From positions 2,270,537 through 2,334,536 of the forward strand of contig NW_026867509.1 in the NCBI RefSeq assembly GCF_020745735.1: a DNA stretch of 64,000 bases, given 5' to 3'. The position numbers were made by a program, and so were the translations under genes. The notes under the pieces are model-generated. The model searched no databases. It was not told where the DNA came from and saw nothing but the letters and a program-made list of their open reading frames with translations. Shown piece by piece: positions 18,713-56,792 of this stretch. Each line of letters starts with the position of its first letter. Position 1 is the stretch's first letter. This DNA comes from Hemiscyllium ocellatum. Lineage: Eukaryota.

Positions 18713-19179
18713 GTATGTTCAAAACTTGTGGAACTTTTACGCTTCAGGTCTTTGCCGGGATATACATTGATTTGAGCAGTTCGGGCAACAGTGAGGCAGA
18801 AACACATTCTCCACAGATGAAAATCACCTGCGTCTAAGATTTCCGAAAACTATGCAAAGCCTGGGAGAAATTAACGACTACGATTGGACAATGACAGGAG
18901 AACAGCTTGGCTGGGAATCCAGACAGGACTGAAGCGATTGAAATGACGTGACAAAGGAAGGACTTTTAAACTCACCGACTGTTTTCAATTATCCTCTCGG
19001 AAAGGGAATGGGAAATCATGTCGTTAATAGTGTGGCCTGTGTTTTAAATAAAAACATTTTATTTTATCTGTAAAAGTCCATAACAGTTCCAGTCGCTGAG
19101 TTGTATGAAATTGATCCTTTTCTAGTTTCCCTGCCTCTTCTTTCTCTGTTTACTTTTCAAGGTGAACGGGCTGATTCAA

Positions 19180-19563
19180 GGCTGAACAGGCTGTGGCTGT
19201 TTTCTCTGGAGCGTCGCGGGTTGAGGGGTGACCTTATAGAGGTTTATAAAATTATGAGGGGAATGGATAGGGTAAATAGACAAAGTATTTTCCCTGGGGT
19301 TGGGGAGTCCAGAAGTAGAAGGTATAGTTTTAGGGTAAGATATAAAAAACACCGAAGGGGCAACTTTTTTTACATAGAAGTGGTGGAGGCTGGTACATTT
19401 GCAACTGTTAAGAGGCATTTGGATGCGTATATTAATAGGAAGCTTTTAGAGGGATATGGGCTGGTTACTGGCAGGTGGGACCAGATTGGGTTGGGATATC
19501 TGTTCGGCATGGATTGGTAGGACCGAACGGTCTGTTCCCATGGTGTACATCTCCATGACTCTG
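19180..19563 (+). mobile_element. CR1/HER1 3' fragment inside the leader-V intron
   Basis: RLNRLWLFSLERRGLRGDLIEVYKIMRGMDRV is the CR1 ORF2 C-terminus, followed by the 3'UTR. Confidence 0.9.
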
Positions 19564-19606
19564 TGAAGGAATTTTTAAAATTTACTCTCACTACTGGTTC
19601 CTACAG

Positions 19607-19913
19607 GACTTTGTTGTGCAGATTCCGTCACGCAACGACCGGATGCAATCGCAGTGAATGAGGGGGATGATGTCCTGTTATTTTGTAATTACACAGCTAC
19701 AACAAGCAGCGATCCTACCCTGTTCTGGTACAGGCAGCATTCCAGCGGCTTCATGGAATTTCTCGTAAAGAGAAGCCAATATATCAGCACCGCAGACAGA
19801 CTTCCAGAAGACCGGATTTCCTCGAAGTTTGATCATGTGAACCGCACTATCCAGCTGAATGTGTTGAAAACAGAACTTACAGACTCCGCAGTGTATTACT
19901 GCGCACTGAGCCC
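19607..19913 (+). CDS. TRAV: Intact TCR alpha/delta variable (TRAV-like) exon
   Basis: Acceptor CTACAG|G. GLCCADSVTQRPDAIAVNEGDDVLLFCNYT...LFWYRQ...IQLNVLKTELTDSAVYYCALS; both canonical Cys and the Trp present, no stops. Alpha versus delta use cannot be decided from sequence. Confidence 0.92.
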
Positions 19914-19952
19914 CACAGAGACTCGGAACATGGCTGACCCCGTACAAAAACT
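19914..19952 (+). other. 23-RSS of the intact V
   Basis: CACAGAG + 23 nt + ACAAAAACT. Confidence 0.92.
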
Positions 19953-21309
19953 GTCAGACAGCAACTGCACATGATAGCACGTCAACGAAACAGTGAGAAT
20001 AGGGGCGGATCTGAAGTTGGATCCGAGTTCAGGGTGATAGCATATACCTCTCGTATGAACACCAAAATTTAACAGTTAGTAATCTAATGAAAATGGATTA
20101 ATACTGTTAGTTCAATGAATTACATACAAATAACTTGTTTTGTGCGTTTTGAGATGCCCAAAGGTGTTTCAATGTTTCAATGATGATGTGGTGTAGAAAA
20201 TGCAGCAACCAGTCGAGTTTAAACCGAATCCTCCAACGACATGGGGAATTGTAGGATTCGGTTGAGAGATAATAGCCTGCCATGTAATTGTAATAATCAC
20301 GCACTCGTGAAAATATAATGACATCAAAAGCACTGCGTGTTACTGAGTACTGCCGCTGTACGGCGTTTCTTCCAGCTCTAGAATGATGAAGGATCGCTTC
20401 AGTAATCCAGAATCATGCAGACTTGATTACTATGTCAATAAGAAAGCGGGATCTAATACACATCGGTAAACTATTACCTAATCAAAAATATATTTTGATG
20501 ACTGAGTAGTAAGTCCGAGCCGCCAGTGAAAGTTTTCGTCACTCTGCTGTTCGTCTGGATGGAAATTAACATTTTTCATCCTTCATGTAAAGGTTTCATT
20601 CTTTGCCAGCAGTTTTCTACTGCAAATTTAACTTACGTAAAGAACAACGGGGTTCCTCTTCTTCAGAGGACAATTGATATAAAACAGAAACCTATGTTGA
20701 AACTGAGTCACGAAAGAGACATTCTTGAATGTGGATGCTCGAATCGAGTTAAATCCGCTTCTGCAGATCACAGGTCGCACGTGGGACTTGGCACCCCTCA
20801 GGAGATAACACATTCTGCACAATTCTGAATAACTCTTTCGTTATAGGAGTGTTGAAACCTATTGATGGAAACCACGAATTGTCATGAGAGTTTATGACAG
20901 GCAGCTGCACGGAAAGTTTATAAGAGTGTTCAGTCTTTGTCTCAGTACGTCATTGTCCAGTGTTGCAAAACAACGTCTGACAACTCAGGACCACCAACAC
21001 TAATAATGTCTTAACTTCCTGTTGATTCAGTCAAGACGTTGAACCAACAGTTAGAGTCAGTCAGAGAACAGTGCAGAAACACCCCAATGGCCCAACATAT
21101 CCATACTACAGGATTATGAAAATATTTTTTGTAATTGAACCCTGCTGAACTCCCCTACAGGCAGTCTGTTCACTTTGCGCATTAACTTTGTTCATAGAAG
21201 TCATTTGCAATGCCGAACAGTTATGATGGCTATCAGAAAATAATTAGTTTGGAAATGCATGCCATGTTGTTAATGACTACTGTATGGATGTCTGCACGCA
21301 AGCTGAACA

Positions 21310-23124: not shown

Positions 23125-23265
23125 GAGAGTGGTGCTTGGAAAGCACAGACGGTCAGGCAGTACTGGAGCAGTAGGAGAACCGACATTTCAAGCAGAAGCC
23201 CTTCAGCATTTTCTTGCTCCTCGGATGTTGTCTGATAGGCTGTGCTTTTCCAACAACACACTCCT
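23125..23265. repeat. Degenerate Penelope-LTR-derived palindromic repeat
   Basis: Similar to the 62939-63115 palindrome, with a central deletion. Confidence 0.6.
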
Positions 23266-26200
23266 TTCTTTGATCTCCAGCATCTGCAGTCCTCACCTTC
23301 TCACAGTTACTTATTGACCAAGTTTCTTCATTCCAAAGTAAGGGCTTATTTCAGATTCATCACACTCACCCCTCGCTTGTATCTGAACTATACCTGCTGT
23401 TATTCGGTGATCCCTCTCTTGCCTCACAAGGTTGACCCTCATCAGAGAATGTAGGTGGAGTCGAGGAGGAGATTACCTCCTGGTATTACTGATGGCCTGT
23501 TAATCCAGAGAGCCAGGTTAATTTCTGGGCGCACAGTTACGAATTCTGCTCTGATAGATGATAGAATCTGAATTTAATTTTAAAAAAGTCTATCTCATAA
23601 TGATTATGAAACTATTGTCGATTGTCTGAAAAACCCGTCCGGTTCACTGATGTCTTTTAGAGAAGGAAACTGCCATCCTTTCCTTGTCTGTCCTATTTTT
23701 GCCTCCAGACTCACAGCAATGTGTTTGACCTTTAACTGCCCACTTTTAGGGGTAGACAGTAAACGCTGCCTTACCAGCGACGTTCGCATGAACTGAATAA
23801 GAAAATACGACAAAACGTTGTTTCTTATTCATATATTAACGATCGAAAACGTGTTGATCCCGAGGATGGTTTTCATCGGGATCCACAAAACCCGACACTT
23901 CTCTTCATCGAACAATCTCAGTCTATTATTTCCTCGAAGGTCTGATTAACGAGAAGGAGCAGAATTACAGGGAAACTCTGGGATCATAGCGGAGCCAGTC
24001 CTGGTCAATTTGCTTTTTTCGATGGTGAAATCATATTACGATCTTTGGACCAACATTATCAGCGTGTATCTGGTGATTGTCGCCACAATATGAATGCAAC
24101 AACAATGCTATCCTTGCACATGTTCGAATCCTACCAGTAACTTTTCACATCAGCTATTTTCCAGTGAATTGTTTACGTAGTACAACAAAAATCGTCTACT
24201 TTGAAAAGTGATGAGCACTGAGTCTAAGAAATGCACTGGAGGCATGTGAGGATCATGCATGCAATCGCCAGATGCAGCAGGAAGCGCATTATCGATTGCA
24301 CTAGCGATCACCCCGCATATTAGTACTTAATCTGCCAGTTGTGCCCGTTTTTAACAGGGGCATGAGCTGGCATGATAAAATTCACAAGCTGAATAATCAG
24401 CAAAGTCAGTTATTAATATTCTTCAATTTCTATGGCTCAGATTGAAATGTGTTGAGATTTTAAGACAAAAACTGACCAGAGGAATTGACACATTTCCCAC
24501 TATTGACAGCTGCATAAGCAACAAGATATTGGGAATGAAGAGTTCGGGGACAATTCTGTTCTTCATATCTTGCCTTCTCTCTCTTGCATGCACAATCTTA
24601 TTATCTACCTCGCTTACACACAAGCTCGCTATTTTTCTCTCACATAGACATTTTCATTACCTCACTCCCTCGTGAATGCTCGATCGAATTTCGCTTTTCT
24701 ATCCAAAGGGATCAAGGGATATGGGAAGAGGGTGGGATTATTCTGTTGACCTCCCTGACCAACCAGAATTACATTGAAAAGAAGAACTGGCTCGAGGTGC
24801 TGAATGACGTATTCGCGTTGGTATTTTTTTATTACCCTATGTTTACATTCGAGATTGAAAAAAAGCACAATTCCTATCTACCAGTAACTTGATTGTGCAA
24901 TACTGATCTTAACAGCGCGCTGCATACAAGCTCATATTCTTATGCCAGTCTACTGGTTGGCTGCAATCAATGTTCCCAATCAAAATAGAGACAAATGATG
25001 TCCAGCTAAGTCTCTGATTATGTAGAAATCTCAGACTAGCATGAACTGTTTAAGCATACACTTTGCTCTCTGGCGGTGCTTCGGCTAGGTGGATACAATT
25101 AGCCATTGGAAATATAGCATTCGATGGGAAGGCAGTGGGTATGGCTGGAATGATCTTTGGAGGTTTGGTGTAGCCTCAATAAGCCAAATGGAGTGATCCT
25201 ATGATTGTTCAAGCTCATTTTCCCAATGTTCTTCATACTGTTGCAACTGACTACAGCGGGAAAAGACTTGATTAACAAAATGCTTGGGATGCCTCCTGTA
25301 CATTGGAACCATTTTCAGCTGTGTATCTCAGGTATCGGAATAAAGTGTGCTGTGGCTTCATTTGCAAACATAAATGGTTTAAGTTGTGAAGTGTTTCGAT
25401 TCGTTGAAATGTGCAAACAAAAGTAAACATGGATTTTCCCAAATTTTTATTTTCAGAATGTTACGATGATGTCATCAGAAGAATTATTTGCTGTGTTTTC
25501 TATTATAACCTGCACCAAAACAATAAAGCAAGGAATTGCGGATGCTCAAAATCTGTCTCTGTATGCATGTATTCCTCCCAATGTATCCATCTGCTGTTTT
25601 GGAGCTTCATACAGCTGTACTGTGCAGCATTTTGTTCTGGAGCGACAGACAGTTGAACAAATGTCTCCACAGGCAATTCATTCACTCCAGATCAAAGATT
25701 TCTATGGAATCTTCTCATCCTCACTGACTTCAGAGATGAGGCCCAGGCTGTTCTAACGCTGAAAATAATGTGTATAGCTGCTCAACCCTATACTCAGCGG
25801 TATTAAAAAAAATCAAAGTTGATCATGTAAACGTATATTAATCTGAACTGGAGATTCCGCCCTGAGTTTGTCCGTAAATTTCAGGAATATCAAGGTGGTC
25901 CATCTGTCTTCACATCATCCTCTGCACTGTTTCCAAATGCATTGAGCCTTTCGTATTCAAACGTCTAACAAAGGGATTACTTATGGGCTCCATTAAGTGA
26001 TAGATACGTTTAATTAGGTCAATCTGAGTTGTAATAAGATACAGTTAACATAATGCAATCCAGATTAATTCAATCGGTGAGTGTGACCCTTCGCTGAGCA
26101 GTTGAATTTCAATATAATCGAATCAGGGATGTACAGCTAGGAGTCTTCAGTCCAACCCGTCCATGACAATCAGATATTCTAAATTAATGTAGCTTCACTT

Positions 26201-26334
26201 GCCACCATTTGGCCCACATACCTCTCAACCCTTCCAATTCAAATATGCATTCAGATGACTTTTCATGTTGTAACTGCAACACCCGTGACAGCCAGCACGG
26301 ATTTGTGAGGGGTAGGTCTTATTGAATTCTTTGT

Positions 26335-27480
26335 GGAGGTGACCAAGTATGTGGATGTAGTGTACATGGATTTTAGTAAGGCATTTGATAAGGTTCCCCA
26401 TGGTAGGCTTATGTAGAAAGTCAGGAGGCATGGGATAGTGGGAAGTTTGGCCAGTTGGATAGAGAACTGGCTAATCGGTCGAAGTTACAGAGTGGTGGTA
26501 GATGGTAAATATTCAGCCTGGAGCCCAGTTACAAGTGGAGTTCCGAAGGGATCAGTTGTGGGTCCTCTGCTGTTTATTAATGACTTGGAAGAGGGAGTCG
26601 AAATGTGTCAGTAAATTTGAAGATGATACGAAGATTGGTGGAGTTGTGGATAATGAGGAAGGGCTCTTGTCGGCTGCAAAGGGAGTTAGAAATGATGCAG
26701 AGCTGGGCTGAGGAGTGGCAGATGGAGTTCAGCCCTGTCAAGTGTGAGGTTGTTCATTTTGGAAGGACAAATAGGAATGCGGAATATAGGGTTAACAGTA
26801 GGGTTCTTAGTAAGGTGGAGGAGCAGAGGGATCTTGGGATCTATGTTCACAGATCTTTTAAAGTTACCACTCAGGTTGATAGAGCTTGTAAGAAGACCTA
26901 TGGTGTATTTGCAGAGGGATTGAATTCAAGAATAGTGAGGTGATGTTGAAGCTGTATAGGATCCTGGGAAGGCCACATTTGGAGTATTGTGTGCAGTTCT
27001 GGTCGCCTCATTTCAGGAAAGATGTGGAAGCTTTGTAGAGGGTGCAGAGGAGAGTTACCAGGATGTTGGCTGGAATGGAGGATAGGTCGTACGAGGATAG
27101 GTTGAGAGTGATAGGCCTTTTCTTATTGGAACGGTGAAGGATGAGGTGTGATTTGATAGAGATTTATAAGATGATCAGGGGAATAGATGAAGGAGACAGT
27201 CAGAGACATTTTCCCCGGATACAACACTGTGTTACAAGGGAACATAAATTTAAGGTGAAGGGTGGAAGGTATAGGGGGATGTCAGGAGTAGGTTCTTTAC
27301 ACAGAGAGTGGTGGGAGCATGGACTGCGCTGCCTATGGGAGTGGCAGAGTCAGAATCATTGGTGACCTTTAAGCGGCAATTGGATAGGTACATGGATAGG
27401 TACTTAAGCTAGGACAGCTGTTCGGCACACTATCGTGGGCCGAAGGGCCTGTTCTGTGCTGAATTGTTCTATGTTCTATA
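26335..27480 (+). mobile_element. CR1/HER1 RT domain to 3' end
   Basis: VDVVYMDFSKAFDKVPHGRL..., [28 protein letters not shown], and a GTTCTAT tail. Confidence 0.92.
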
Positions 27481-27870
27481 CATCTCCCTCTGGCAGTTCA
27501 TTCCATGAATGCCCTACACTCTGCATGAGAACGGTGTCCCAATATCATTTTACATCTGCCGCACCCCGTCTTAACTGAAACATATGCGCTCTCGTTTTGT
27601 ACTCCCTTACCATGGGAAATAGACGATGACTAATCACCCGATCCATGCCCCTCATGACTTTTTTAAACTTCTGTAAGTTAACACCTCACCCTCTGACGTT
27701 CCGGGGAAAAAGCCTCAGCCTACTCAGCGTATCTTAACATCTGAAAAACGCCAAGCCTGGCCAAACCCTTATAAATCCTTTCTGAATCGTTTTAAGTTTC
27801 ACAATATCATTCCTACAGCAGGGAGACCAGACTTGAACGTATTATTCCAAAAGTTTGCCTAAACAATGTC
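27480..27870 (-). mobile_element. CR1 3' relic, opposite orientation
   Basis: Antisense of the CR1 C-terminal and 3'UTR motifs. Confidence 0.65.
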
Positions 27871-28894
27871 GTTAACAGCTGCGATGTGGTCTCCTACATC
27901 GGATATGCAATGCACTGATGACGAAAGGCAAGGGTACCAAACGTCTTCTTCACGATATTGTCTACATCTGAATCTAATTTCAAAGAACAATGAACCTGAA
28001 ATCTACAATCTCTTATTCAGAAAAGGTCCCCTGAACCTTACCAGTAAATGTGCAAACCTGCCCTGATTTTCACTTTTCAATTGTTGCACTTCACTTTTAT
28101 CTGATGTTAACTCCATCTGCTATTCCTTCAGCCATCAGCCCATCTGATCAACGTTCCATTGCATTTTGAATTAGCCTACATTGTTGTCTACTACACCACA
28201 AAAATTGATTTCACCTGCAATCTTACTAATCACATCTCTTTTATTCACATTCAAATCATATACACATAATGACAAAAAGTTGGTAGACCAGCACCGAGTC
28301 TTGTGGCACAACGATGGTCGCAGTCCTTCCATTCGAAAAGCAACCCTCGACACCACACTCTGACCAAACACCAGATCACATTGCAATAACGTGAGAAAGA
28401 AAAGCCAAAAAAAACAATATCAGCAACGGAATAACCTTCAAGATTATTTCGTCGCTGTAATTCCTAAAAATAGATAAAATTGCACTGATCATACAAATGA
28501 CGGGTATATATCTCTCCTGTTTACACGACTGTTAGATCAATGACCTCAGTTGTATGAGAAACTCGTTCAAGATTGGCATGACAACAGACAGTCTAGAAGA
28601 CTGAAAAGAAGTTATAAATGAAGGCACATCAGAGACACTTCCATGACAATTCGATAATATTTTGAAACCAGCCACAGCCAAGAGGAGACGCTGAGTTCGA
28701 AACTCAGTGAAGACTATGTATTGTCAGCCCGAGACTGGCAAGTTGTCATCCACCGGCAGGATCTAGATTGTAGTCAAATCATTAGATGCTGCGTCGATTG
28801 TCTGCTTTCAAATGAATGAAAAGGTGAAACATAGAGAGGAAGTTGGAGTCTTTTCTAATTTCGCTGTTTGCACTTCACTGAGGAATTCGAGATC

Positions 28895-29197
28895 CGAGTT
28901 AAAAAGGAAGGTCAACACCAGTATCTCAAACTTAAAATAAGGAAGAAAGTAATTGCCCATATAGTCGCAACTGAAAGAAATGTCACAAAGAATGAAGCTG
29001 TATTCAGCCACTGCCTGCCCGGCAATAAAATTCTGATAGTGCTAAAATCATGATGTCTGAAGCCCCCTCTGTCATTTTCTCGGCTTTGTACCCCTCCAGA
29101 CTTTATACCAATAATTGCAAAGGGAAATGCTCTTTTTTAGTTCCACATTCCCATTGACAGCACCGGGAAGAAATCGTTTGCACAGAAGACAGCTCCT
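28895..29197 (-). pseudogene. Very decayed Vdelta-like exon (candidate supporting V of cassette 2)
   Basis: ~300 nt, ~390 bp downstream of the J2 donor. Fragments GAVFCANDFFPVLSMGM, YWYK, FSCDYMGNYFLPYFKFE and DTGVD are collinear with the 44 kb and 57 kb V exons; shares CTTTGCAA with both and TTGGTATAAAG with the 44 kb copy. Confidence 0.4.
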
Positions 29198-29585
29198 TTA
29201 ACACGTTCCTGTGTTCACAGCAAAGTTCAACTCAACACGTGTGAGTGAGTGTTACAGCTTTGGTAACCTGAATCCATTTTACACAAATCAAATTGAATGA
29301 GAGTGAGAGACTGGGATTATGGTTGCATCATCTGATGACCCTTTTGAACAAGGATGTGTCAAATGAGGCCAACAACACCTATTCGCCCATGTCTTGGGTG
29401 TCACTCCCAGACTTCACACATGCAGATAATTCTGCTCTCAAATCTAAATTTGTAACAAACGTGTCTCTCAGAAATCTGTTGAATTTAGCTGGAATTGTAT
29501 TGAAGAAGTATAGATCACAAGAATGCAATAATAGTACGCTTTTTCCTAGACAGTTCTGAACACGGTCGGGTTTGGAGTTACTTGC

Positions 29586-29637
29586 CAGCTGTGACAGTCA
29601 CCTCCGTTGTGGATCCATCTACTGTTCCATTGTACAC
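29586..29637 (-). other. NAR-TCR-type J segment 2 (open frame, GC donor)
   Basis: VYNGTVDGSTTEVTVTA + G|GCAAGT; homologous to J1 (shared GTGACTGTCACAGCTG). Confidence 0.88.
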
Positions 29638-29676
29638 CACAATGACAATGTTCTCGGTCACACAAATGCAAGAACG
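29638..29676 (-). other. 23-RSS of J2
   Basis: Minus: CGTTCTTGC + 23 nt + CATTGTG. Confidence 0.85.
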
Positions 29677-29974
29677 AATGACACCTTAATGTCCTGGGCG
29701 AAAATCACCAGTTGGCTCTGCGTCAGTATTGAGGAGAGTTGAATCAGTGCTCTCGATTCCAAGTCTGATACAATGCATCAATTCAAGTTGTTCTTGAGGA
29801 AATTCTAAAATCTCAGAGAACGTGAACTGGAGATGAACTCTTCGCAGAAATTGAGAATAATGTCAAAGAAAGAGAACAGAAGTATGAAATTACAGTAAAA
29901 TCAAACCCGGATGCGAACTTCTCCGCATGCATTTGTGGGTACAGGCTAACAGAATATCTATTGCAATTGTGTAT

Positions 29975-30046
29975 GATGTTTGTTTAGGTCTCATCCACTG
30001 TGTGGCTCCACCCAGTAACACAATATTTCTACACAGCATCAAATCT
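29975..30046 (-). other. D segment 2 (coding 30003-30018) with 12/12 RSSs
   Basis: Plus: GATGTTTGT-12-CACTGTG, 16-nt core (minus TTACTGGGTGGAGCCA), then CACAATA-12-ATCAAATCT. Confidence 0.82.
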
Positions 30047-30398
30047 CCCGGTATTGGTCAGATGTGGACTTTTTGAGTAAAAAGCGACTTCAGGTGCGAG
30101 CTTCAGAATTGGATGCCATCAGGTATTCGTGAATCCTGAAAGGCATCAGTCATTCCGAACAGCGTTTCACTGACGATTATCCCATAAAACACATCACTAC
30201 TAGATCCCCTCAGCATTTAGAATTGTTAAAAACCATAACAACGACAAACCAGTTTTATGAGAACCAGGACAGCGGATTTGGTGGAAAGAGGGGGTGATAA
30301 GGGCTGCTCAGGGGTGATGGGTTTCGAATTTTCACATTCTTCTGTGATAATTTGCAGAGGCAGTTTGGAAATCGCGCCAGGCCAAGCCACATCACTTA

Positions 30399-30679
30399 CT
30401 GCTATAACTGTACAAGGATTTAAAATAAGAGGTGGCAGTATTTTTCACATTCTGAGCGTCTGGCGAAAATGCATTTTCTATTCTATTTGAAATCAAAACA
30501 AACCATCCTCCAGATAAGATTCGGCCCCGATCTGTTCCAGTCTGTTTATCTGACGAATTCGCCCTGCTGCAAAGGATATGCAAAGAAACCACCATAGAAA
30601 ATGTAGTCGATAGTGGGAGACTGACACTCTTCCTTGATGCATGCTGGTGGAGTCTGTACCACTGAATGACAGACACATC
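30399..30679 (-). pseudogene. VNAR-like (NAR-TCR) V exon 2, pseudogene
   Basis: Acceptor CCAG|G. GCVCHSVVQTPPACIKEECQSPTIDYIF...R*, frameshift, GRILSGGWFVLISNRIENAFS...VKNTATSYFKSLY. Canonical Cys residues mutated (Y, F); RSS degenerate. Confidence 0.82.
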
Positions 30680-30811
30680 CTGGAAATTAAAAAAAGGAGA
30701 TATTAGTCCGCAAAATGGAACTGAGCCAGAGACGATGTCTGTTTTTTTTCATGGATTCATGAAGCTTTGTACCAAATGGGCACAATATTAGATTGTTGGA
30801 TCTGTACTTTC

Positions 30812-30851
30812 CGGCTAAACAGGCAAACAGCGTAAGGACAAGGACTCACAT
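30812..30851 (-). pseudogene. Leader exon of NAR-TCR V2 (inactivated)
   Basis: ATG TGA VLVLTLFACLA + G|GAAAGT (mutated donor). Confidence 0.7.
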
Positions 30852-33800
30852 CGTGTTGCTGCCAGGTTCAGCAGATGCTTCATACAGCCTGGAAGCTGAA
30901 AAATCTTTCAGGAGACGGGAACTGAGAGCTGGACTGATAGACTGTAGAATGATCAAATTAACTTGCTAAGGCAAGTCCTTTGAATGGATGTGAAATCCTC
31001 TCATACATGACTCTGATCTGCAGGGAGTGGTGTTGGAGACTGTTCTGTGAGTAGAGTCTGCCTTCCTACGTGCACCCAGAGAGTTGAGCTGAGAAGATGG
31101 TCATGTGGTTTCATTGATGCTGTTCTTTGCGTTTAAAAAGTTGGGCCAGGACGTTGTTTTTTTTCTCATTCAGGAAACCCCCACTCACTACATTCCGTTA
31201 CTGACAGGGGGCCATCAGCATTTTCCTGAACTGCTTAACAGGATTATGATTTAATATTTACTCAGAACGAGCACTTCTCAGAGATAGTCAATGAGTTTCA
31301 GTCCAATCTCTCACAGCTGATAACACAGTCGATTGTCAATATCCTGGAACAAAATATGGAAACATCCTCATTTTAACCTGGGTTTCGTACAAACTTCCTG
31401 GTTTGAAAACTGTTTATTCTGTTGTTCAAAAAGATCAAGACTTATCTGAATTTTTCATATTCTCATCTACCCCTGATTAAAATGCATGTGTATTCTGAAA
31501 GCAAGGATTTTATCTAACATTACCGAAAAAAAATCATAGACCTGCTTACCGTGCCTTTTAGAAAACAGAATTTAAAAAAACCTCATAGTCCCTGTGACAA
31601 AAGACGTCACCTTTATCTCTATATAGAATGCTCAAACCCTAATCATCAACCCCTGGATTCGAGTTCAATAGTCTCCGAAAGGAGAGGACATCCTTTCCGT
31701 GTTTGTGCTGCCAAGACTCTCAAGGTCTTATGTGCGTCAGTCAAATGGGCTCTTTCTCTTCTCACCTCAAACAGACAAGTCTCCAGTATCCGTGCTGGCG
31801 TCACAAGTCAACCTGTCAATTCGAGACATTGGTTCAGCATAATTTCGGCGATCTGCTTTCAACATATTCACACACATCGTAAATAAAGAGTGCAGTACTG
31901 TGCATGCAAGGGAAAATATGTTCACAATCAGAAAAATAAAAATGTATACCTGAAACAGAACCTTCCTACTGTTGCAGCAGGTTCTGATCGGAATAGAATG
32001 GGAGAAACTGTTCCCGCACCGAAAATGTTAGAGAGCCTGAAGCCATAGGTTTGAAGGTGCGTGGGCCACAAGCCTTGAAGCAGCATGTGAGGCACCAGCC
32101 CCGACGTAGTTAGTGGGCCACGAGTCCCGGAGCTGCGTGTGGTCTGTCAGCACTGGAGCAGGTGAAGAGAGCAGCGCAGAGAATCAGTCCCACATCAGCA
32201 CCCCAGAAAGCAACCACGGGCCATCGCACAGGCAGTGAGTCATAGGTTGACACCAGTGCGGGGGAAGCAGTCCACGACTTACTCTGGAGCAATTGAATGC
32301 CTGTATGGAATGGACTGTAGATTAATGTGGGACGAGGATTGTTGCTGTTTCGTGGACTCTGACTTGGAACGTTCGTTCAGACCCACGTACTGGGACGCTA
32401 TGCTGAGCTGCGTTGATGTAATGGCTATCTGTATGTATAAACTTATTCTTCAGCTCGTTGTAATAATGCAAATACTTCTATTTCTTTGCTGTAGTCAAGA
32501 AGTGTACTGAAATACTTGTCCCCTAACATATCGTCATAAGAAGGCGGACATTGCAAAACTTTTTTACTGCACTCGTGGAATATTCACATTACAGTAGAAT
32601 GATATTCTAGTATTCAAGGAAACATGTTGTAAAAAAGACAACATGAGAATGAAATAAATTATTTTCCGCGCAATCAGCCACCCAGTTATGGGTGAACAAC
32701 CTAGAAGGTGCAGGAGACAGTCTTACTTGAGACATTCAGAAGGACAATGGACTCTTCTTGATTGAGCAAATGCACAGGTTATGTGTGGAAGTTTCATGAA
32801 TTTGACACTAAGTTGCTGATTTTCCTCATCTAGCAGATTAACATTCGTGAAATTGTGGTTCCATGAATTGCATGGTCAAAAATGAACATGTTCTACGAAA
32901 GTTGCTAATTATTTACCGCATGTCAGTACTAACGTACCATACTTCATGGTCTGTGACACCCTTCTGTATCTCAGTACTCTGTTACTCTCGGCAATTAGAT
33001 AACATACTTTTTTTTACTCTTCCTGCTGTATCTGACAATTTCAAATATTTAGGCACAATGCTCTATCTTCTAGATCGTTCTGCATTTGTTTAACATACCT
33101 ACATTCCTCTTGTCTATTGTTTTGATCGAATTCAATTCAGCTTCCTCCTCTTCTGTGTCAAATATGCCACATGTTCTTTACATTCGCCTGCTAATGACAA
33201 TTACCTCACTGGCCTGAATTTCAGTATCCCGGTCTGCTTTCTTCTGAAGGTGATGAATCTGATCCAAGATGTGCAAAATTCACACATACTCACACAAAAT
33301 CAAAACATTGCGTCACGTGTGACAATTTGGGACAATACGTCCAATTCTGCCAATCGGAGACAGAAGATTTGGATCTGACAGATTGAAATAAATGTACAAA
33401 CTGAATCTTTATTCATAGGTGGACTCTTTGAAAATGGGAAGTAAGCACACTCTTGTGTAAACAGTGATGGAGCATATTGATACTACTTCAAAAGGCTATT
33501 TTAGAATCTTCTGACAATCTTCACGTTATGCTTCCTCAGTCTCTCACCTAATAGCATCAGAACATTGCTAAAACTGTGCAAAGTTGGTTTTGCATTGGCA
33601 CAACATTTTAGGCAGTCAGTTAATTGCGGGGGGAATAAAAACTCACATTTCTTCTTGAAATACGTTTGGGTAATGGAGGAGCAGTTCTTATGGATCATTC
33701 ATCTCGGCCATAGGTTATGCTGAACACTTTTTGCAATATTTTGTTTGTGCTGATATCGTTAAGATCGTTAAGGTGGCTGATATCTTTGTGATTCGAACAT

Positions 33801-37585: not shown

Positions 37586-37776
37586 GACACTCTAAGCCGA
37601 ACGCTTTGCAAGTCGAACTAACTGTCAGGATGTTAATTTGTAATTTTTGATTCAAGTTCATGTCTAAAAAATACCAATTGCATTCAGAATCTCATAGATT
37701 ACTTCTCGTTATTCGTTGTTCTCAGATTCTATTTCTCCTCTACTTCTACATTCATGTATATATGTTTCTATGACAG

Positions 37777-38687
37777 CTAACCTGACAGTGATTGTGATCC
37801 TTTCTCAAAGAAAATGTGGCCTTTCTAGTTGCATCATTTATTACCTGGTATCCATGGCAGGGGCAGATCTCTTGGTCGTGGTAACTGCTGTAATATTAAA
37901 CCGTGTTGCTGGAATTTACTTCCCATCAAGCTTCTTGTTCATCACTCCAGTGTGCAGTCTACGTGATGCCATCATATACACAGCAATTGATTGCTCAGCA
38001 TGGTTGACGGTTGCTTTTACCTTTGATCGATTTGTGGCCATTTCTTGTCAGAAACTGAAAATGAAGTACTGCACGGAAAAGACAGCTGCACTGGTTATTG
38101 GAATAGTGACTGCACTCAGTTGCATAAAAAGTGCCTTTATGTTTTTTATTAATGAACCTATCTACATTATTAATAATGTGCCCTGGTTCTGCAACATAAA
38201 ATTAATATTTTATACGTCCCCTGCGTGGGCAGCTTATGATTGGATTCGTACCATTTTAACCCCTTGTCTTCCATTCATTCTGATTTTACTTCTGAACGCT
38301 CTAACTGTGAGACATATTATTGCGGCCAATAGATCCCGCAGGAGACTCCGAAATCAGAGTAGTGGAGAACATCAGAGGGATCCAGAGATGGAAAAACGCA
38401 AAAAGTCCATGGTTTTACTCTTCGCCATCTCGGGCAGCTTCATCCTGTTATATTCTTTATTTTTTATAACTACCATCTATGTCCGAATTGCGAATGTACC
38501 TTATTTCTCAGGTTTCAATTTAAGTCAGTCGGCATTCATTCAACAGGAAACTGGGTACCTGCTTCAGTTTTTGAGTTCCTGTATCAACCCATTTATTTAT
38601 ACAGGGACACAGAGTAAATTCAGAGCTGAGTTAAAGAATGGATTGAAATATCCACTGAGTCTCCTTATGAAGTTTTGTAAGGTTTGA
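37777..38687 (+). CDS. GPR139/GPR142-like class A GPCR, exon 2 (spliced product ~326 aa)
   Basis: Acceptor GACAG|CT. ANLTVIVILSQRKCGL..YLVSMAGADLL, TFDRFVAI, TPCLPF..LLNALTVRHI, CINPFIY; open to TGA with hydrophobic TM segments. Confidence 0.9.
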
Positions 38688-43799: not shown

Positions 43800-43946
43800 G
43801 TAACTCATTTCAAAACATATCCACTCTTCCACATTCAAGAATAACTCACGTTATTTTCTCTATTGAGAAAATTTTCAGTCAAGTGACGGTGGGTAATATA
43901 GTGTAATAATAAGATGTCGAATTTCTGTATTACTAAATGCATGCAG

Positions 43947-44265
43947 GTGTTGCTGGTGCAGACTTGGTCTTCCAAGAGTCGGTTTCAGCGATGAAATTTG
44001 TACAAGTTACAGTAGCCATTAGTTACAATTAATTGAACACTTCTGAACATTCTTTGCAAAGGTATTGCCAGGATTGGTATAAAGCATCGACATTCGTGAT
44101 CTACATCACAAACCATGGAGCTGTTTTCAGATCTGAGGGTCCTCATTTCTCTGCTGACATCGACCGTGTGAACAGTGAGGGGAATTTCAGTATCGGTGAG
44201 GTTCACTACTGGTTCACTAATGTCGTTTATGAAAGGAAACTGTCCTCCTTACGTCTGTCTGAAAA
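43947..44265 (+). pseudogene. TCR Vdelta-like pseudogene
   Basis: GVAGADLVFQESVSAMKF..ISYN*LNTSEHSLQRYCQ..FVIYITNHGAVFRSEGPHFSADIDRVNSEGNFSIGEV. Cys and Trp lost, RSS degenerate; clear paralog of the 57 kb V. Confidence 0.75.
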
Positions 44266-45689
44266 GTGACTCCAGAACCGAAACAATGCAGTTGACATAT
44301 AACTGCCCTTCTGGCAACAGGGGAAACGCAATAAATGCTGCCTCACTAGTGACGCCCTCATCCTGTGAATGTATAATAAAACAAAGGTGTGTGTGTCTGT
44401 CTGATTGCGTTGTGTATTAGTGCAGGCCAAAATACACAGTGACACGTACCAGAGGGGATTTGGCACAAAGGACACTGCCACGTTCGCACAAAGTAAGGAG
44501 CTGAAGGCTTGTGGGGGAATATGCATTGATTGCAAGAATTAATGAACAAATTCTAAACAAAAGTATTTGTATATGATGCTCCCAGCAGCTCTGAGCACCG
44601 ACATTTGAAAGATAAGTCAGCTCTGCAGTGAGGAAATGGCAGTTGAAACATAATGCAATGACTTAGCCTCCCTTCTCATGCATGCATGCTGATTTTTCCT
44701 TGTCAGTGAAAACTCTTTCCTATCTCCATTTAAATGGTGCTAGCATACGGTGACAAGAGAAAGTCATTCCCTCGGGTGTCCTACCTGGATTTTTATCGCC
44801 ACTCCGCACTGAGACTGACTAGACAGAGTGAATGAATAAGAACGAATATCTGAAAGTAAATTCATAAACATATTTCTCTCACTGAACTTTTTTTGTTTCT
44901 GGCCATTAACTACCAAGCTATATCTCGGCGGAGTTAGCGGTCAAGCTCTGTCAGGTCAATTGGAGAGACTATCTCTCTGGTTAGGTAGTGACCTATCATG
45001 TCCCAGTTTTCTTAACTTCTATAGACCAACAGAGCACAGCATTGATATCTTGCTTTGACAGCAATATTGCCTTGTCGTTATCGAAGTAATTATATCAGTA
45101 GATCCCATTTGTCACATCGCATGAGCTGAATGATGTGACAGCAAATTTAATGGATCCAATGCAGTCAGCTTTCTCTTGCTCGATGATCTGCAGGGTTCTG
45201 AGGCACAGAAAGATCTCTGGCAACTCGGATCAACAGTAATGTTGATATCCTTTCTCTTTCTGTTTTGGATTACTTCAATGTTGAAACAAAAATGACCTTA
45301 AAGTGAGCTTAATCTTTGGCTTCTCTTACATAAAGAATGAAGGACACAAATTACAACGGATAAACGATTTATGGACATGATGCGAGAAAAGAAAGATTTC
45401 AAATGTCAGAATTTAATAAGTCAGCGTGGATTCGTTTATCTGTGAGCGAGAAGATTATTGGTAAAAAGACTGATGGTTAAAAGAAAGTTATGAGGGTCCA
45501 GACGTGGAGAGGAATACTCAACTTGAGAAGGATTCCAGTTCTACACTTTTAAATAGACATGTTTACTTGACACAACGTGCTACGATGATGACTTGAAGAG
45601 GAATTTGTTCAGTAAGTGATGCAATGGTCAGTGGATTTCCTGATATTAAGCCAAACACCCATAAACGACTATCTGGCCTCGTAATGTAC

Positions 45690-48600
45690 TGTAACATGAG
45701 TAACAGAGAACACCAAACTTCCACTGCTTGAAGAAAAAATATCACATTATTCTTGAATTCTAACCAGGAACATTGAACAACAACAATTTTCAAGTCTGAG
45801 CCATTGTTCTCTGAAAAGTTTATTCTCCACCTCCCACTCAATAACAATGTTGTTCCAAAAAGCCCCTATTAAAATTACATCAACTGTATTTTCAAAACTA
45901 GAAGGCGGTGGTCGTCTCTAGTGTCCTCCTCCCTCTTGGAATAGATATCTCTGGGTCATCTTCGGTATTTTGCGAAAGATATATCATATGGAAATGTTAC
46001 TTTCAATACAGAGTTTTGAACGGCAGTCTCTCCGTAGATGGTGGTTTACTCTTTGTCTGGCTAGCTCACAAACTTTCCGCTGCTTCATACCCCAAACATC
46101 AGACTGGCTCATTGGTTCGACGTTAACAAAAGCAATGAACTCACATTTGATTGCACATTAGTGTCTTGGGGGACACTTTAACTGATTGGTTAAATTAGAT
46201 ATGTTCTGAACACAGCCAAATATGATATGTTTTCAATGTTCCAGTGCACTCTGAGACTACTAGTCAGTCATATGACAAGTGCTTTCAAACTCTCAGTGCA
46301 AAACAGCTTTCACTTCGTTTAAAGGTACAGTACACGCTTTGAAATTCTTAGAACCTCCCTCTTCGAGAAAACAGGTGAACTCTCATTATGAAAAGATGGC
46401 TTTTTTCTAATTCTTAACCCCATTACCATGAAATACATCGCAAATTAATCGAATTCCATATTAATTCGCATATAAAGGTATCTGTTCACTTATATCCACA
46501 TCTTTCTATTAAGTCCGCAATAATGCATTTGCCATGAAATTATGTAGTGCAACATGTACGATTTGTAAATTGAAAGTTTGTAAGGAAATTGTCTTACATT
46601 ATTGCCTTTACACCTTCCAAGTATCCAAGAGGGTTGTGATCCATTCACACAACCATCTCTGAAGCATTGTTCGTCACATAAACGTTAAAATGTTGTAAGG
46701 CCAGTATGAAAATCAATAGGTCCTTCGCAATTGTAGACTATTTTCTTTGTGGATGTTGAGTTTATTTGAAAAATAAACACCCGGTCGTTCAATTCCATCA
46801 TCATCTTCCTGTAGCAGTACAGCCCGACTACATCACTCGCATGGGTTGCAACTTAACAGAGTTTCAAAGTATTTAGTGTAGTTTAAACAAGTGCCGTGTG
46901 TAATACTGCATTTACTTTGTTAAATGCCTCCTGGTATTACTCTGTGCACTGAAATTTTGTGTTCTACTTCAGGAAATCTGTTAGCAGTGCCACAATGCTG
47001 CGACGTTTGGAACAAACTTTGGTGGAATCCGCTTTGTTCCAAAAAATGAAAAAGGTTTTTTTTGTGGTTGGTTGTAAAATTCCTCGATAGCTGTCGTCTT
47101 TGTGTTCCTTCGGGTCAGCCTTCTATGACCAATGTTATGTTCCAAGAAAGTCACCTCTGCTTTCACGAATTCTGTTTTCTTGAAATTGTTTTTAGTGAGT
47201 TTTGCTCCTTTTAATCCTTCAAAACGCTCTGCCAAATGTACCATGTGATCTTTCCATGACTCACTAAAAGTCGCCAGATCATCCAGATGGATTGCACTAT
47301 TTTCTAATCCAGCCATAGCTCTGTTTATGAGAGTTTGGAATGTGGCCGTTGCATTCTTCAGTCCTAAGTACATCACTTAAAAATTATACAGCACATTTTC
47401 AATTACAAAATCAGACATTCCTTATACTTTCTCCGATAATGGACCTTGCCTCCAACCACTCAATAAATCAAATTTTCCAATGTAACTGGCTTGTCCAACT
47501 GTCTCTATATAGTCCTCCAATCTTGGTCGTGGTTATGAGCCCAATTTTATTTTGGCATTGATCTTTCGAGAGTCCACACGAGATCATTGAGTAACTTTAG
47601 TTTGGGAACGAAGACAATCAGCGAACTCCACTTTTTCTGAGTTGTTCCTGTATCTTCGTTGAGCATCACATCTGCATGTTTCTCGACATGTCGGCTTTGA
47701 AAAGACTAAGCTTTGTTGGGTGTGTTGTTTTGTTGGGAAAAAAAACATTACCTACTACTACTTTATGCGCAGTAGCACAATGTTCCCCATCTTTATCCTA
47801 CATGTGCCCAACAAGCCTTTCAACTACATTCTTTGCTCCTGAAGCAAGTAGTTTACTAACGTATCCCACTCCCCAAGGCCTTTCTCATTACGCAACGTAT
47901 TTTGAGGCACATCAAATAACAAAAGATCTGTATTATGTTTGCTCACTCTGTGGGGCACTAACTAACACCTATTTCCCGTGTTCCTTCTCTCCACCATAAT
48001 AATATTTAAAAATATTCACATGACGTACAGGATGCAATTCTTTTCTATCCGGCATCTTTACCAGGAATTTTATCTGACTCAACTTTTTCTCAGTTTGATA
48101 GAGTTCTTTAAACCTGGCTTTGACGAAATTTCATTCCACCCGTAACAATACTAATATGTCTTCCCCAAGAGAAAACGCCCAAATTTCAGAAGTTCTATCT
48201 GTCTTCTGTTCCAATCTATATGGTGCCCTATTCAGGTGCTGTTGCACTAACTCACCTCATCGATTCAATCCATCCCTCACATCCGAGACAATCCAGGTGA
48301 GAGATCGCCGACTTCAGTCTTGTCAATTCTCATTCATAAATTTCAAAGTCCATCTCACATCATGTCCGAATATAAACTCAAAAATCCTGACAGTGCGCTC
48401 TTAACATGGTCTGCAGCATCTGATGCCACGTTTCCAAAGCTCCCTGGGATTCAGGCTGTTTCGCACTTTATTTAAAGTGCTGTATGCATAAGCTATCCAT
48501 CACCTCCTTAAAAAGCACAGTAGTAATGTTAGACCGTTGTTCAGACTGAATCATTCTGGGTAACCCATACCACTTGAAGAAATCTACTAACTCCACGATC

Positions 48601-51600
48601 ACACCTTTTTCCTTGATACTCCATAATGGAAGTGATTGCACAAAACTCAGAGACACATTCATTACGGTCAACAATTATTAGCTCCCACTTCTAGTTCTTG
48701 AGAGCCGACCTGTACAATCAATCATAACCCGCGTGAAATATTCTTCGAATCAGTAGCAAAGGTACGGGTTTTATTATTGCCTGCGGCTAACTTACCATTC
48801 ATCATGTATGACATGTATGCCACTTGTTAAGAACATTCCTGTGCATTCCACGCCAATAAACATGATTTTATACCTGCACCTGAGTCTTCCGTACATCTTG
48901 GTGAATTCCTACTGGTAGTTCATGTGCTCCTCGTAACACTTCCTTTTTGTACGCCACCAAAAACACAACTTGGTGCACTTTGGCCCATTTCAACTCTGCA
49001 CTAACATGCTGTGGTCTTCATTTCCGTCAGATAATAACTCTTCGGAATATTCTCTGCCTCCTTTTCAGATTACATACCCACATATACATCTTTTGTCGTC
49101 TTGCTTTGCTGTTATAAGTATCTTAGCCTTTCAGGACGAAAGACTTCTGGCGGACGCTCTGCCTGTTCAAGTTTTTCCTTCATAATTCCATCAAACATGG
49201 TATCGGCTAAGTGAATGTCAAATTCTGCATCTTTCTCTTTCATTTCTGCTTCGCGCTGTGTATTATGATAGTGGGATATGGTTATCACATAGTCTTGGCA
49301 AATACCAAGGTATTTTTGTTTTGACTCCACAGTTTCTTGATCTTCTTTGAGCTTCTTCGCAGGAAGGGGTGCCGGTCCCACCTTGGATCCTTCAAAATCA
49401 TTCCCAAGAACAAACTGAATTCCTGAACTGGCACTCTGTCAATCACTCCCATTGTAACATTCCCTGACTTAAGTTGGGCCTCCAATCTGATCTTACATAA
49501 GGGAACGCTAAATTTCTGTCCATCTATCCAAAACTTTACCACACGCTCTGGTAATAGATCAGAAAGGATGCTTATTCCCTCACTGCTTATTACCAATGGC
49601 TGCTTAGATATTGTATCTCTCAAAACCATAACTTAATGTGATCAACCCTTGTTCTTTCTGATTAAATTTTGTGCACAGAGGTACCAATTTTGCAGAGATC
49701 CTGTACGAACACCATATCCAGCCTCAGCCTAGGCTGTGCGCCTACCTGCAGATCGTCGGCTCTTCTCGGGGTCTCTTTTACTACATTCACGCATGCCACT
49801 GGCTTCTTTTGCTACATCTTTTCTCAAAGCGCCTTTCTTTATCGAGCAACACTTGTCCCACTTTAAGACAGTGCAAACACCTGAGTCCTTCCACTTCCTT
49901 TCCACTCTCTTGGGCATCTTTATTTAAGCTTTAGTAAATATTACCAGAGTCTGTACTCTTAGTTTTAACGTATAGGATCTCCTCTTGTCCCACCTTCTCT
50001 CTGTCACAGAATGAAACTCTGGCCGGACGTTTATCTTATACATCAACATGTATTCATCTACTCTTTCTACTGCCCTTCTCATTTCCTGACTATTCTGTTC
50101 CACCACATGAGTTTGTACCATCTCGGGAAGTGAGTTTTTGAACTCCTCCATCCGAATAGCCTCTCGGAGATCCTCAAAGGTCCTATCTATTTTCAAAGCA
50201 CGCATCCTTCTATCAAAATGACTGTGCTAATTCTTTCGAACTTAGCATTAAACTGACATGGTTCCCTTTTTGTTTTAGATCTGCTATTTAAACATTTCTT
50301 GTACCGATTCTTAACACTGAAAACAGTAAAAGATGCCACAATGCATGGGAATAAAACCCAGGTCTCCCGCTTTGCAGGCGAGAATTCTACCAATGAACCA
50401 CCAATGCAACTCTGGGAGGCACGGTGGCTCAGTGTTTACTACTGCAGCCTCACACCACCAGGGTTCCAGTTTCGTTGCCAGCCTCGGGTGACTGTTTGTG
50501 TGAAGTTCTCACGTTCTCCCTGTGTCTGCGTGAGTTTCTTCCGGTTTCCTCCCACTGTCCAAAGATGTGCAGGTCAGGTGAATTGGCCATGTTAAATTGC
50601 CCCATAGTGTTAGGTGCATTGGTCAGAGGGAAATAGGTCTGGGTGCGTTACTCTTCGGATAGTCAGTGTGGACTGCGTGGGCTAAAGGGTCTGTTTCCAC
50701 ACTGTAGGGAATCTAATCTAATCTCAAAAAGCCTATTTACCTTCTTAATAATCTCTGGACCCCTCATCTGACAACGCGGTGGATACCTCACTTTATGTGC
50801 CTAATGGTTTAGTCTGAACCACCATTACCCATAAATCCTCGGATCAGTCCATCTGCCGCGTCAATTTTTCAAATGAAATAGGGAAGGATTCAAAACCGTT
50901 TTCATCAACACTTGGCCGAGTTTGAATATATTTGTATATATCACTACCATCTCTTTTAATCTCCACCTTGTTACCTTACCTTGACTGACGAAGTTGCAAT
51001 TTCTCAAGTTCAATTCTCTCTAGTTTTACTCAGCTAAGAACCTTCTGACTCTTTATGTTCCCTTTGCTTCTTTCCCTCTGTGCTCAGCCACGAAGCTTCT
51101 CACTCTTTCTGTCTTTTTGCTCTTTCTTTCTTCTCTCTTCTCTCTCATTCTCTTTCGCTCTCACTTTCTCTTTCCTCTATCTTACTCCTTTTTTCTTTCC
51201 TCTACCTCTCTTTGTTTATTCTCTAACTCCATTTTCCTCAATAGTAATTTAAGTTTTTCTACCTCTAATTCTCTTGTATGTTTCGCCGACTCACCTACAT
51301 AATTGAGTAATTCCCTTCCAATGTCAGGTTTGGTTTGCTCCCTGTTTACACCCCAATCTAATTGTATGTCTTTCTTTCCTTCAAAACTTAGTTGGCAAAT
51401 TTGAGAAACATTTTCAAATCGCACAACTACTTTCGCAATTTAAGAGAAATTTCTCTTACTTTTAATTTAATCACCAAGTTACCGAATTTAAACAAATTAT
51501 CTCACCTATGTTTTATTTTGAAGATCTAGAATCCTAGCCTGCAAGCTTTTAAATCTGGTGGCATGTTTTGGAACCCCAAATCTATTCAATTATCTCTCAT

Positions 51601-53827: not shown

Positions 53828-55159
53828 GTGAACAAGTAGAATGCGGCTGTCTTTACCAGAAGGAGCACGAATGAATAACAAAGATGTACTTAACAGAACA
53901 CCAAGATAAACGTGAGTGAGAAAGGAATGGAAAGATTTTCAGATCGAATGAAAGGATGAAATGTGCAGAATGCTTTCGTTATTGAGGGCAGCTTATAACA
54001 GCGGTCAGACACAGACATTTCAGTCCATTCCTGTGAGAGAATTGCTGTGTGAGTGATTCACGGTAACTGAACAGCGGACTGATGCCACAACAACGTTAGC
54101 CATTACACATCAATTTCCCAGACAGACTCTGTCAATGACCAAAATTGAATTTAAAACTCATTTAAGCTTTATTCCATCATCAGAAAAAAAATGTTGCCAT
54201 GGTGCTGAGTATATTTGCGACCTACGTTGATAGATTAGTGCTCCTTAAAGGACAGAGATGATTAGGTGATTCAGCAAGACAACGTGGATCAATTCAGATG
54301 CGCCAATTAGCTTCTTACAGCCTCCATTCTGCGTTCACGTGGCGAGCACTTTGATATCATGGATTGAAGACAAGGGAGGTGTAAAGCGATTGAGTGATCC
54401 TTGATGACACCAGCAGAATTGAATTAATTTGCATGGAGTTCAGATGCGACATGCTTTTGAACTCAGCTGAAACAATTCAGTTTTAATCCCTTTTGATCAG
54501 ACCCAAACATGCTGGCTCTTCCTATTTGCTCATTCTTAAAAGGCACAATTTGTTAAGAGGTAAGTTGTTGTGCTGTGAATTGATCACTTTTGGGTAACAT
54601 GTCTGCAGTATTTTTCATGTAGTTGTGTTTATCTGTAATAAAATATATGCTTTAATTTGAAACATTGATTAAAATCATCATTTTATTATGATTTACTTTC
54701 TATATATCTGTAGCTGTTAAATCTGCAAATCCTATTCCACAGAAGCCAGTTACAGTGACACAATATGAAGGAAATTTCACGATTATTCTTTTCCACTATT
54801 CAGTATGTACGATCTGAATATTGCAATTTTACCTTCAGGGATCCGGTAAATCTCTGATATTCTTAATCTACATTCCAAATTGTTGAAATGTCGTCAAAGC
54901 AAATATCGTGTGCTCCGGACTTCCTGCATCTCTGGACACTTCACAAATGAAGGGAATTTCGCCATCGGTGAGCTGCAGCGATCTGACACTGGGGTGCATG
55001 ACTAAGATTCAGAGTGACAGGAAAAAGACAGAGCCTCGGACAAAAAAAAATGAAAATGGCTCTAATTGAACAACGCGAATGGAATAGGCAGTGGGCGATG
55101 CATGAGGAGCACAATGTGCAGAGCATACAGAAATTTCCATATTTCATCTTGAAAAGCAC

Positions 55160-56753: not shown

Positions 56754-56792
56754 AGTTTTTGAACCAGGCTTCGTATGATCTACGTCATTGTG
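56754..56792 (-). other. 23-RSS of the 57 kb V
   Basis: CACAATG + 23 nt + TCAAAAACT. Confidence 0.88.

Follow-up and report, generated by a model that had tools for sequence, protein, structure and literature searches.

The NAR-TCR receptor type of cartilaginous fish has reportedly been known since the work of Criscitiello, Saltis and Flajnik in 2006 (PNAS 103:5036). In living NAR-TCR, RAG brings together a NAR-type V, whose recombination signal has a 23-nt spacer, and the D (12/12) and J (23) that belong to it, and a splice donor terminates the J exon (PMC1845163, PMC12227049). Splicing then links the joined V-D-J exon to a leaderless supporting TCR-delta V, itself rearranged separately to TCR-delta D and J segments, so that the delta chain has two V domains (PMC1845163, PMC12227049). 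Hallmarks of the NAR-TCR V are a typical leader exon, an a-b loop cysteine and absence of the canonical Trp in the WYRK motif (PMC1845163).

The window studied here, by which we mean the whole 64,000-nt stretch of DNA analysed, is vertebrate DNA of ~40% GC, assembled without gaps. Two regions of its minus strand are compared below, cassette 1 (~2.6-1.0 kb) and cassette 2 (~30.9-29.3 kb). An original prediction had described the second as a complete unit of leader, V, D, J and supporting V that duplicated and died long ago. Our favoured reading, to which we give a probability of roughly 0.8, is that the minus strand from 30937 to ~29306 would be a germline NAR-TCR leader-V-D-J cassette, long a pseudogene and without a recognisable supporting V, and that the DNA proposed for that domain (28895-29197) is not one. 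The surroundings of the two cassettes hold the following genes, and retroelement debris is also present within the window.

19621-19913, plus strand: V19, an intact TCR-type V gene with a 23-spacer signal (Pfam V-set, E 3.9e-11)
37698-38684: an intact rhodopsin-type receptor open reading frame
43915-44300, plus strand: V44, a pseudogene of the 44/57 kb V family
54697-55046, plus strand: V54, a pseudogene of the same family, the fourth V in the family search (nhmmer)
56740-57130, minus strand: V57, a pseudogene of the same family

Identity and layout of cassette 2

An HMMER search of 1.84 billion proteins with a 68-residue piece of cassette 1 returned seven shark gene models (P0001-P0007). These encode, in order, a leader, a NAR-type V, a J (DGSGTVVTVTA) and a second V, beginning DS.SLVS and with a Cys in CDR1, which is the published NAR-TCR architecture (PMC1845163, PMC12227049). 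Searched against the window by tblastn, the seven models matched cassette 2 in two frames, at 30686-30549 and 30544-30410 (best P0005, E 3.6e-17; P0003, E 3.3e-10), and a profile of their 7 NAR-TCR V domains matched the same V relic at E 4.8e-10 and 4.1e-7. Detection came from NAR-TCR-specific queries only: the Pfam V-set model found no match on open pieces of cassette 2, and phmmer found none between its pieces and PDB chains, VNARs included. For comparison of whole units at the DNA level we used a single intact NAR-TCR unit (n=1), here called L001, from another shark assembly (GCF_021869965.1, NC_063373.1, locus positions 23243-27700). The parts of cassette 2, and the neighbouring segment in dispute, are as follows.

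30926..30937, minus strand: upstream motif TCAGTCCAGCTC, promoter or 5'UTR region, 75 nt 5' of the leader ATG
30812..30851, minus strand: leader exon relic, M*VLVLTLFACLA (three-way alignment with the leaders of cassette 1 and L001)
30400..30679, minus strand: NAR-TCR V exon relic after the acceptor TTTCCAG (tblastn, profile, codon table)
30361..30399, minus strand: V recombination signal, decayed, 23-nt spacer (aligned to cassette 1 and L001)
30019..30046, minus strand: D 5' recombination signal, partly decayed, 12-nt spacer, nonamer AGATTTGAT, heptamer TATTGTG
30003..30018, minus strand: D segment of 16 nt, TTACTGGGTGGAGCCA, with heptamers on both sides
29975..30002, minus strand: D 3' recombination signal, perfect heptamer CACAGTG, 12-nt spacer, nonamer ACAAACATC (RSS scans, 14/16 consensus positions)
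29638..29676, minus strand: J recombination signal, 23-nt spacer, nonamer CGTTCTTGC, heptamer CATTGTG (12/16 consensus)
29586..29637, minus strand: J segment relic reading ..VDGSTTEVTVTAG (blastn against the cassette 1 J; three-way alignment)
29306..29585, minus strand: start of the J-to-supporting-V intron, first ~280 nt, homologous among cassettes (nhmmer)
28895..29197, minus strand: claimed supporting-V relic, treated here as intergenic or intronic DNA (similarity tests at chance level bar one)

The V relic is read in frame A from 30677 to 30549 and then in frame B from 30544 to 30400, giving (G)CVCHSVVQTPPACIKEECQSPTIDYIFYGGFFAYPLQQGEFVR* followed by QTGTDRGRILSGGWFVLISNRIENAFSPDAQNVKNTATSYFKSLY. 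It retains the a-b loop Cys, in KEEC(30626-30624)QSPTIDY, has FVR where functional genes have FFRQ, and has no Trp. A 118-aa open frame at 30395-30748 was considered as the V frame and dropped, because functional proteins put FR1-CDR1 in another frame; that open frame is thus partly accidental. Upstream, the leader ATG lies at 30851-30849 (functional leaders for comparison read MGILLVFSLCVCLP). The motif TCAGTCCAGCTC has only two exact copies in the window, in cassette 2 and at 2588-2599 in cassette 1, and is partly kept in L001 as TCATCCGAGCTC.

The signals follow the same plan in all three cassettes. Cassette 2 has GTAAGTG at the V heptamer position and TCCAAACTG at the nonamer position, the counterparts being CACATTG-23-CCAAGACTC in cassette 1 and CACAGTG-22-TCAAAAACT in L001. 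Its D 5' signal is homologous to the cassette 1 sequence ...CACTGTG that adjoins the D there, and its J signal corresponds in alignment to GGTTCTTGT-23-GATTGTG of cassette 1. The layout, 23 (decayed) at V, 12-D-12, and 23 at J, obeys the 12/23 rule, and L001 has the same one (spacers of ~23, with 22 at the V signal, 12 and 23). That the two cassettes share one geometry was borne out by the distances, V-D being 381 nt in cassette 2 and 351 nt in cassette 1, and D-J 365 and 374 nt; the corresponding distances in L001 are 383 and 376 nt. The D proposed for cassette 2 is likewise present (30018-30003, with its perfect 3' heptamer, 12-nt spacer and nonamer), and is 16 nt long, as it is in cassette 1 (1687-1672) and in L001 (24114-24129).

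The J segments of the two cassettes, which had been described as homologous, are 84% identical over 49 nt (blastn, E 1.9e-8). Compared with the functional DGSGTVVTVTA, the cassette 2 relic lacks the G-x-G motif's second Gly (GSG to GST). The position of the J donor, ..ACAGCTG|G.AAGT, is kept; this putative phase-1 donor is GCAAGT in cassette 2 as against GTAAGT in cassette 1 and L001. The post-J motif TTGAGAGCAGAAT lies at 29429-29441; like the upstream motif, which the original prediction had also named as shared, it has two exact copies in the window and no more, one at the corresponding place in each cassette. The start of the post-J intron is homologous by nhmmer between cassettes 1 and 2 (E 2.7e-6) and between L001 and cassette 2 (E 5e-4); beyond ~280 nt after the J donor, block identity among the three equals the shuffle baseline. 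Together with collinearity to cassette 1, the tblastn and profile matches of the NAR-TCR gene models uphold the proposal of a second NAR-TCR-type leader-V-D-J cassette, at 30851-29586.

Cassette 2 thus resembles L001 in the order and spacing of its parts, in its 16-nt D, in a homologous promoter motif, in the position of the J donor and in the first 160-280 nt of the intron, whereas L001 differs from it in having open reading frames and a supporting V, which begins 2,665 nt past J (J donor to supporting-V acceptor) and is followed by three tandem 23-RSS. Block by block, cassette 2 is 45-60% identical to L001 and cassette 1 ~70%, the latter at ~67-72% identity over 2,021 nt of exon, intron and spacer sequence (E 3e-165). 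In a blastn search of the window with the intact L001 unit, cassette 1 was matched and cassette 2 was missed; cassette 2 was found by nhmmer.

Cassette 2 is like the NAR-TCR cassettes of cartilaginous fish in that a leader precedes a NAR-type V with an a-b loop Cys and no WYRK Trp, in having a D and J of its own, the J terminating at a splice-donor position and not before a C exon, and in its place among TCR alpha/delta V genes. It is unlike them in being a pseudogene with multiple lesions and in having no detectable leaderless supporting V-delta with a CDR1 Cys. Compared with the V of IgNAR (VNAR), it belongs to the same V fold family and shares the patterns ..VVQTP....KE..QS.TI.. in FR1 and GG.F......K.FSL in FR3; unlike a VNAR, it went undetected by phmmer against the PDB VNAR chains. 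IgNAR has three D segments, whereas cassette 2 has one, and a NAR-TCR J splices to a V exon, that of IgNAR to C exons.

Inactivation and divergence from cassette 1

Cassette 2 carries lesions from end to end. In the leader, codon 2 is a TGA stop (30848-30846) and the donor at 30811-30806 reads GAAAGT where GTGAGT is expected. In the V relic, the canonical Cys23 has become Tyr (30605-30603) and Cys104 has become Phe (30424-30422), a TAA stop (30548-30546) adjoins a frameshifting 2-nt deletion, and FR3 has lost 6 nt. The V heptamer has lost its CAC, and the J donor at 29585-29580 is GCAAGT, not GTAAGT. With the leader stopped, both donors mutated, both cysteines gone, a stop and a frameshift in V, and the heptamer CAC lost, cassette 2 would be incapable of NAR-TCR assembly or splicing; judged by its sequence, it is dead, an ordinary pseudogene of a known receptor type.

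The homology of the two cassettes is colinear. Shared exact seeds of 11-17 nt fall on nearly one diagonal (offsets 28338, 28328, 28338 and 28315), which has the highest ungapped identity among 1100 diagonals (z ~4.6). MAFFT alignment places the islands of homology at the upstream motif, the leader, the V acceptor, FR1 and FR3, the D plus its two heptamers, the J plus its signal, and the post-J motif. The lesions of cassette 1 are a missing ATG, a 1-nt leader deletion, a 1-nt insertion in V and a TAA in FR3. A shared frameshift, which would have placed death before duplication, was considered and dropped, because the codon comparison resolves it into two different indels a few codons apart: the 2-nt deletion of cassette 2 affects the QT codons, which are undamaged in cassette 1, and two to three codons beyond them cassette 1 has its 1-nt insertion, at a place where cassette 2 keeps the frame. 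Codon by codon, no disabling lesion was found that is common to both cassettes. The differing lesions argue for independent deaths, and the absence of a common one suggests that the shared ancestor was probably functional.

Amino-acid identity between the two cassettes is only 29%, as against 52-64% between either one and the gene models nearest to it. In the tree, cassette 2 clusters with P0003 (GCA_964213995.1) and P0005 (GCA_036365525.1) at a support of 0.95, and it has the CDR1 YGGFFA(R)xL in common with both; its sequence thereby assigns it to a 'YGGFFA' CDR1 sublineage of NAR-TCR V, and the V of cassette 1 belongs to another sublineage. This grouping, and the low mutual identity against the higher identity to gene models, indicate two old sublineages and not a recent duplicate pair. 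Both sublineages have gene models from other shark assemblies among their relatives, and these models look intact. We infer that the lineages were functional when they parted and that each died on its own. Of the earlier proposal that the unit duplicated and died long ago, paralogy to cassette 1 and long-standing death are retained, and a simple duplicated dead unit is given up in view of the different sublineages and lesions.

The segment at 28895-29197 and the supporting-V family

About 390 nt after the J donor, the original prediction had placed a relic of ~300 nt, said to be collinear with the 44/57 kb Vdelta family and to be the residue of a leaderless supporting V; on that reading, loss of most of the intron would have brought it so near to J. 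The segment is on the right strand and downstream of J, yet in the comparison with shuffled sequence that had been set in advance it aligns to V no better. In blastn with word size 7 it yielded conflicting matches of 20-25 nt only. A V57/V44/V19 nhmmer profile recovered V57, V44, V19 and 54697-55046, and nothing at 28.6-29.4 kb at E<=100. Local and semi-global nucleotide scores against the four V genes, V54 included, were like those of dinucleotide shuffles or random window segments (p 0.11-0.95), and frameshift-tolerant protein-to-DNA alignment gave p 0.12 for V19 and 0.29 for V57, the segment scoring 30-33 where true relatives score 74-110.

Queries drawn from supporting V domains gave the same picture. 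The seven NAR-TCR gene models, five of them with a clean supporting-V domain, matched V19 and V57 only in tblastn, with none at 28895-29197 at E<=1, and an HMM of the five domains reached 28811-29041 at E 16, as against E 8.4e-15 for V19 and 0.014 for V57. The supporting-V DNA of L001, used in nhmmer against the window, found V19 only. The Pfam V-set model found no match on open pieces of 28.8-29.1 kb, sliding frameshift-tolerant scans with two supporting V proteins ranked 28.9-29.2 kb at 0.12-0.19, and an RSS scan found no minus-strand signal near 28.9 kb or after the segment. The one test above chance was a frameshift-tolerant scan with the supporting-V profile, in which windows at 28.65-29.4 kb rank 0.037 (the top 3.7% of the window); here the downstream half of the region is aligned to FR1-CDR1, in a register unlike that first proposed. 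A match of the L001 intron preceding the supporting V to 28917-28741 (nhmmer, E 2.6) was taken as noise, no V signal following it.

What probably drew attention to this DNA is a V-like skeleton in one frame at 29119, C-x2-WYK ... G..P ... YFL, whose spacing is roughly that of a V. Such skeletons are rare, with 0.58 expected per shuffled window, but the pattern was written after the sequence had been seen and has a clearly spurious match at 30825; its Cys and Trp are only 2 residues apart, and there is no properly spaced CDR1 cysteine. The distance also differs, 390 nt after J against the 2,665-nt intron of L001, although the intact length is read from the DNA of that one cassette and a shorter J-to-supporting-V intron is therefore possible in the sublineage of cassette 2. 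As a complete unit the proposal would span 1,957 nt, against ~4.2-4.5 kb in three intact units, L001 and gene models in two further assemblies (4,197 and 4,481 nt), and it was not sustained. An equally old supporting V should be detectable as well, given that searches still pick up the NAR V relic of cassette 2 at E 1e-10.

The claim that the segment identifies the supporting-V family fails on the family itself. V57 bears only a weak resemblance to genuine supporting V domains (profile E 0.014, 29% identity), while V19 gives a much stronger match (E 8.4e-15); one cross-species pair of such domains, P0003 and L001, has 65% identity. On these sequence comparisons the 44/57 kb V family does not appear to be the supporting-V family, and its members at 44, 54.7 and 57 kb should not be annotated 'supporting V'. 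We consider it very improbable that 28895-29197 is a decayed supporting V with kin at 44/57 kb; that it is the last trace of a supporting V, left 390 nt from J by intron deletion, is a long shot, and if true it would make this the sole NAR-TCR unit with a compact double-V layout. An equally speculative second possibility is that TCAGTCCAGCTC and TTGAGAGCAGAAT, exact in both dead cassettes, may be conserved regulatory elements of NAR-TCR units.

Fate of the partner V and meaning for the family

Searches with the supporting-V profile, proteins and DNA found no supporting V on the minus strand from 29.6 to 2.7 kb, the 26.9 kb downstream that separate cassette 2 from cassette 1. The intact V19 lies on the opposite strand and would thus be unable to serve either cassette. 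From the intact cassettes a supporting V is expected ~2.4-2.7 kb past J, near 26.4-27.0 kb, and none was found there. We infer that cassette 2 either lost its partner V or arose by a copying event that did not include it.

Two histories may account for this. 1. A supporting V once lay ~2.4-2.7 kb away, and a retroelement insertion or a deletion destroyed it, leaving cassette 2 an orphan. To this we give slightly less than even odds. The end of homology to cassette 1 and L001 ~280 nt after the J donor, the interspersed-repeat matches at 26.1-26.3 kb and a weak plus-strand ORF of reverse-transcriptase-like sequence at 26584-26940 (RVT_1, E 1.4e-3, which does not reach the Pfam threshold) are consistent with such an event, as is the lack of any minus-strand V between the two cassettes. 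Beside that ORF, however, no V fragments were found, V scores there being marginal (rank 0.03-0.10), and cassette 1 ceases to be homologous to L001 where cassette 2 does, which makes an insertion in the L001 lineage another possible cause of the break.

2. The leader-V-D-J part alone was copied at the origin of cassette 2, which on this view lacked a supporting V from the outset and never functioned. That no supporting V was detected in the 26.9 kb of minus strand downstream would fit this, yet we regard it as improbable: the two cassettes have no disabling lesion in common, the grouping of cassette 2 with the intact-looking P0003 and P0005 of other shark assemblies argues that its lineage was functional after the split, and the start of the post-J intron and the context of the J donor are conserved, as expected of a spliced unit.

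Whichever history holds, cassette 2 is known in kind. It is one more dead copy of a gene family already described in sharks, and as such it matters little by itself. V-D and D-J spacing, a 16-nt D and the 23 / 12-12 / 23 layout of signals are common to the two cassettes here and the intact L001 unit, and the two cassettes in the window represent different old V sublineages, told apart by CDR1.

A dead cassette and its intact counterpart

Over window positions 1004-2947 (-), cassette 1, a leader-V-D-J cassette of the NAR-TCR type, aligns with positions 22800-24808 of L001, a locus with an intact NAR-TCR unit in another shark assembly (GCF_021869965.1, NC_063373.1), at 67% identity across 2,021 nt (E 3e-165), and this match includes the leader intron as well as the spacers between V and D and between D and J. 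Cassette 1 is dead, with its ATG gone, a TAA in FR3 and a frameshift. L001 also carries a second NAR-TCR V (2945-3270, +), a pseudogene with stops and a frameshift; the intact unit follows 20 kb downstream of it.

V19 and the supporting V domains

19579-19971, +, V19, the sole intact V of the window

V19 scores higher than any other sequence in the window against authentic supporting V domains of NAR-TCR units, the leaderless TCR-delta V onto which the V-D-J exon is spliced (E 8.4e-15, 31-37% identity). Its start (..cag/ATTCC..) resembles that of the L001 supporting V, whereas the CDR1 Cys of the supporting V is absent. No leader exon 1 is evident for V19; an ORF lies directly upstream (19074-19517), for which no match was found in Pfam. 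Directly behind the intact L001 supporting V are three tandem 23-spacer recombination signals (L001 27532, 27593 and 27654, +), spaced 61 nt apart.

V pseudogenes of the 44/57 kb family

43915-44204 and 44396-44469, +, 44 kb V pseudogene, in two pieces
54697-55046, +, fourth V pseudogene of the family (nhmmer E 2e-16)

The V family placed at 44 and 57 kb by the original prediction gains a member at 54697-55046 that was missing from its listing. An ORF (55002-55505), for which a Pfam search returned no significant match, adjoins the 3' end of this pseudogene. The 44 kb pseudogene, which is in the opposite orientation to its 57 kb relative, looks to be split by ~190 nt, and its 3' piece bears a recombination signal, CACAGTG-23-ACAAAGGAC, at 44435.

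Other sequences among the V genes

46984-47376, -, reverse-transcriptase-like fragment (RVT_1, E 7e-6, below the Pfam cut-off)
49927-50226, -, SCAN-like piece (E 2e-5, below the Pfam cut-off)
37698-38684, +, intact rhodopsin-family receptor ORF, 329 aa (7tm_1, E 1.4e-24)

The first two are probably the remains of one retroelement. The receptor ORF is placed among TCR V genes. A NAR-TCR gene model of a different shark assembly has several 7tm_1 genes inside its span.
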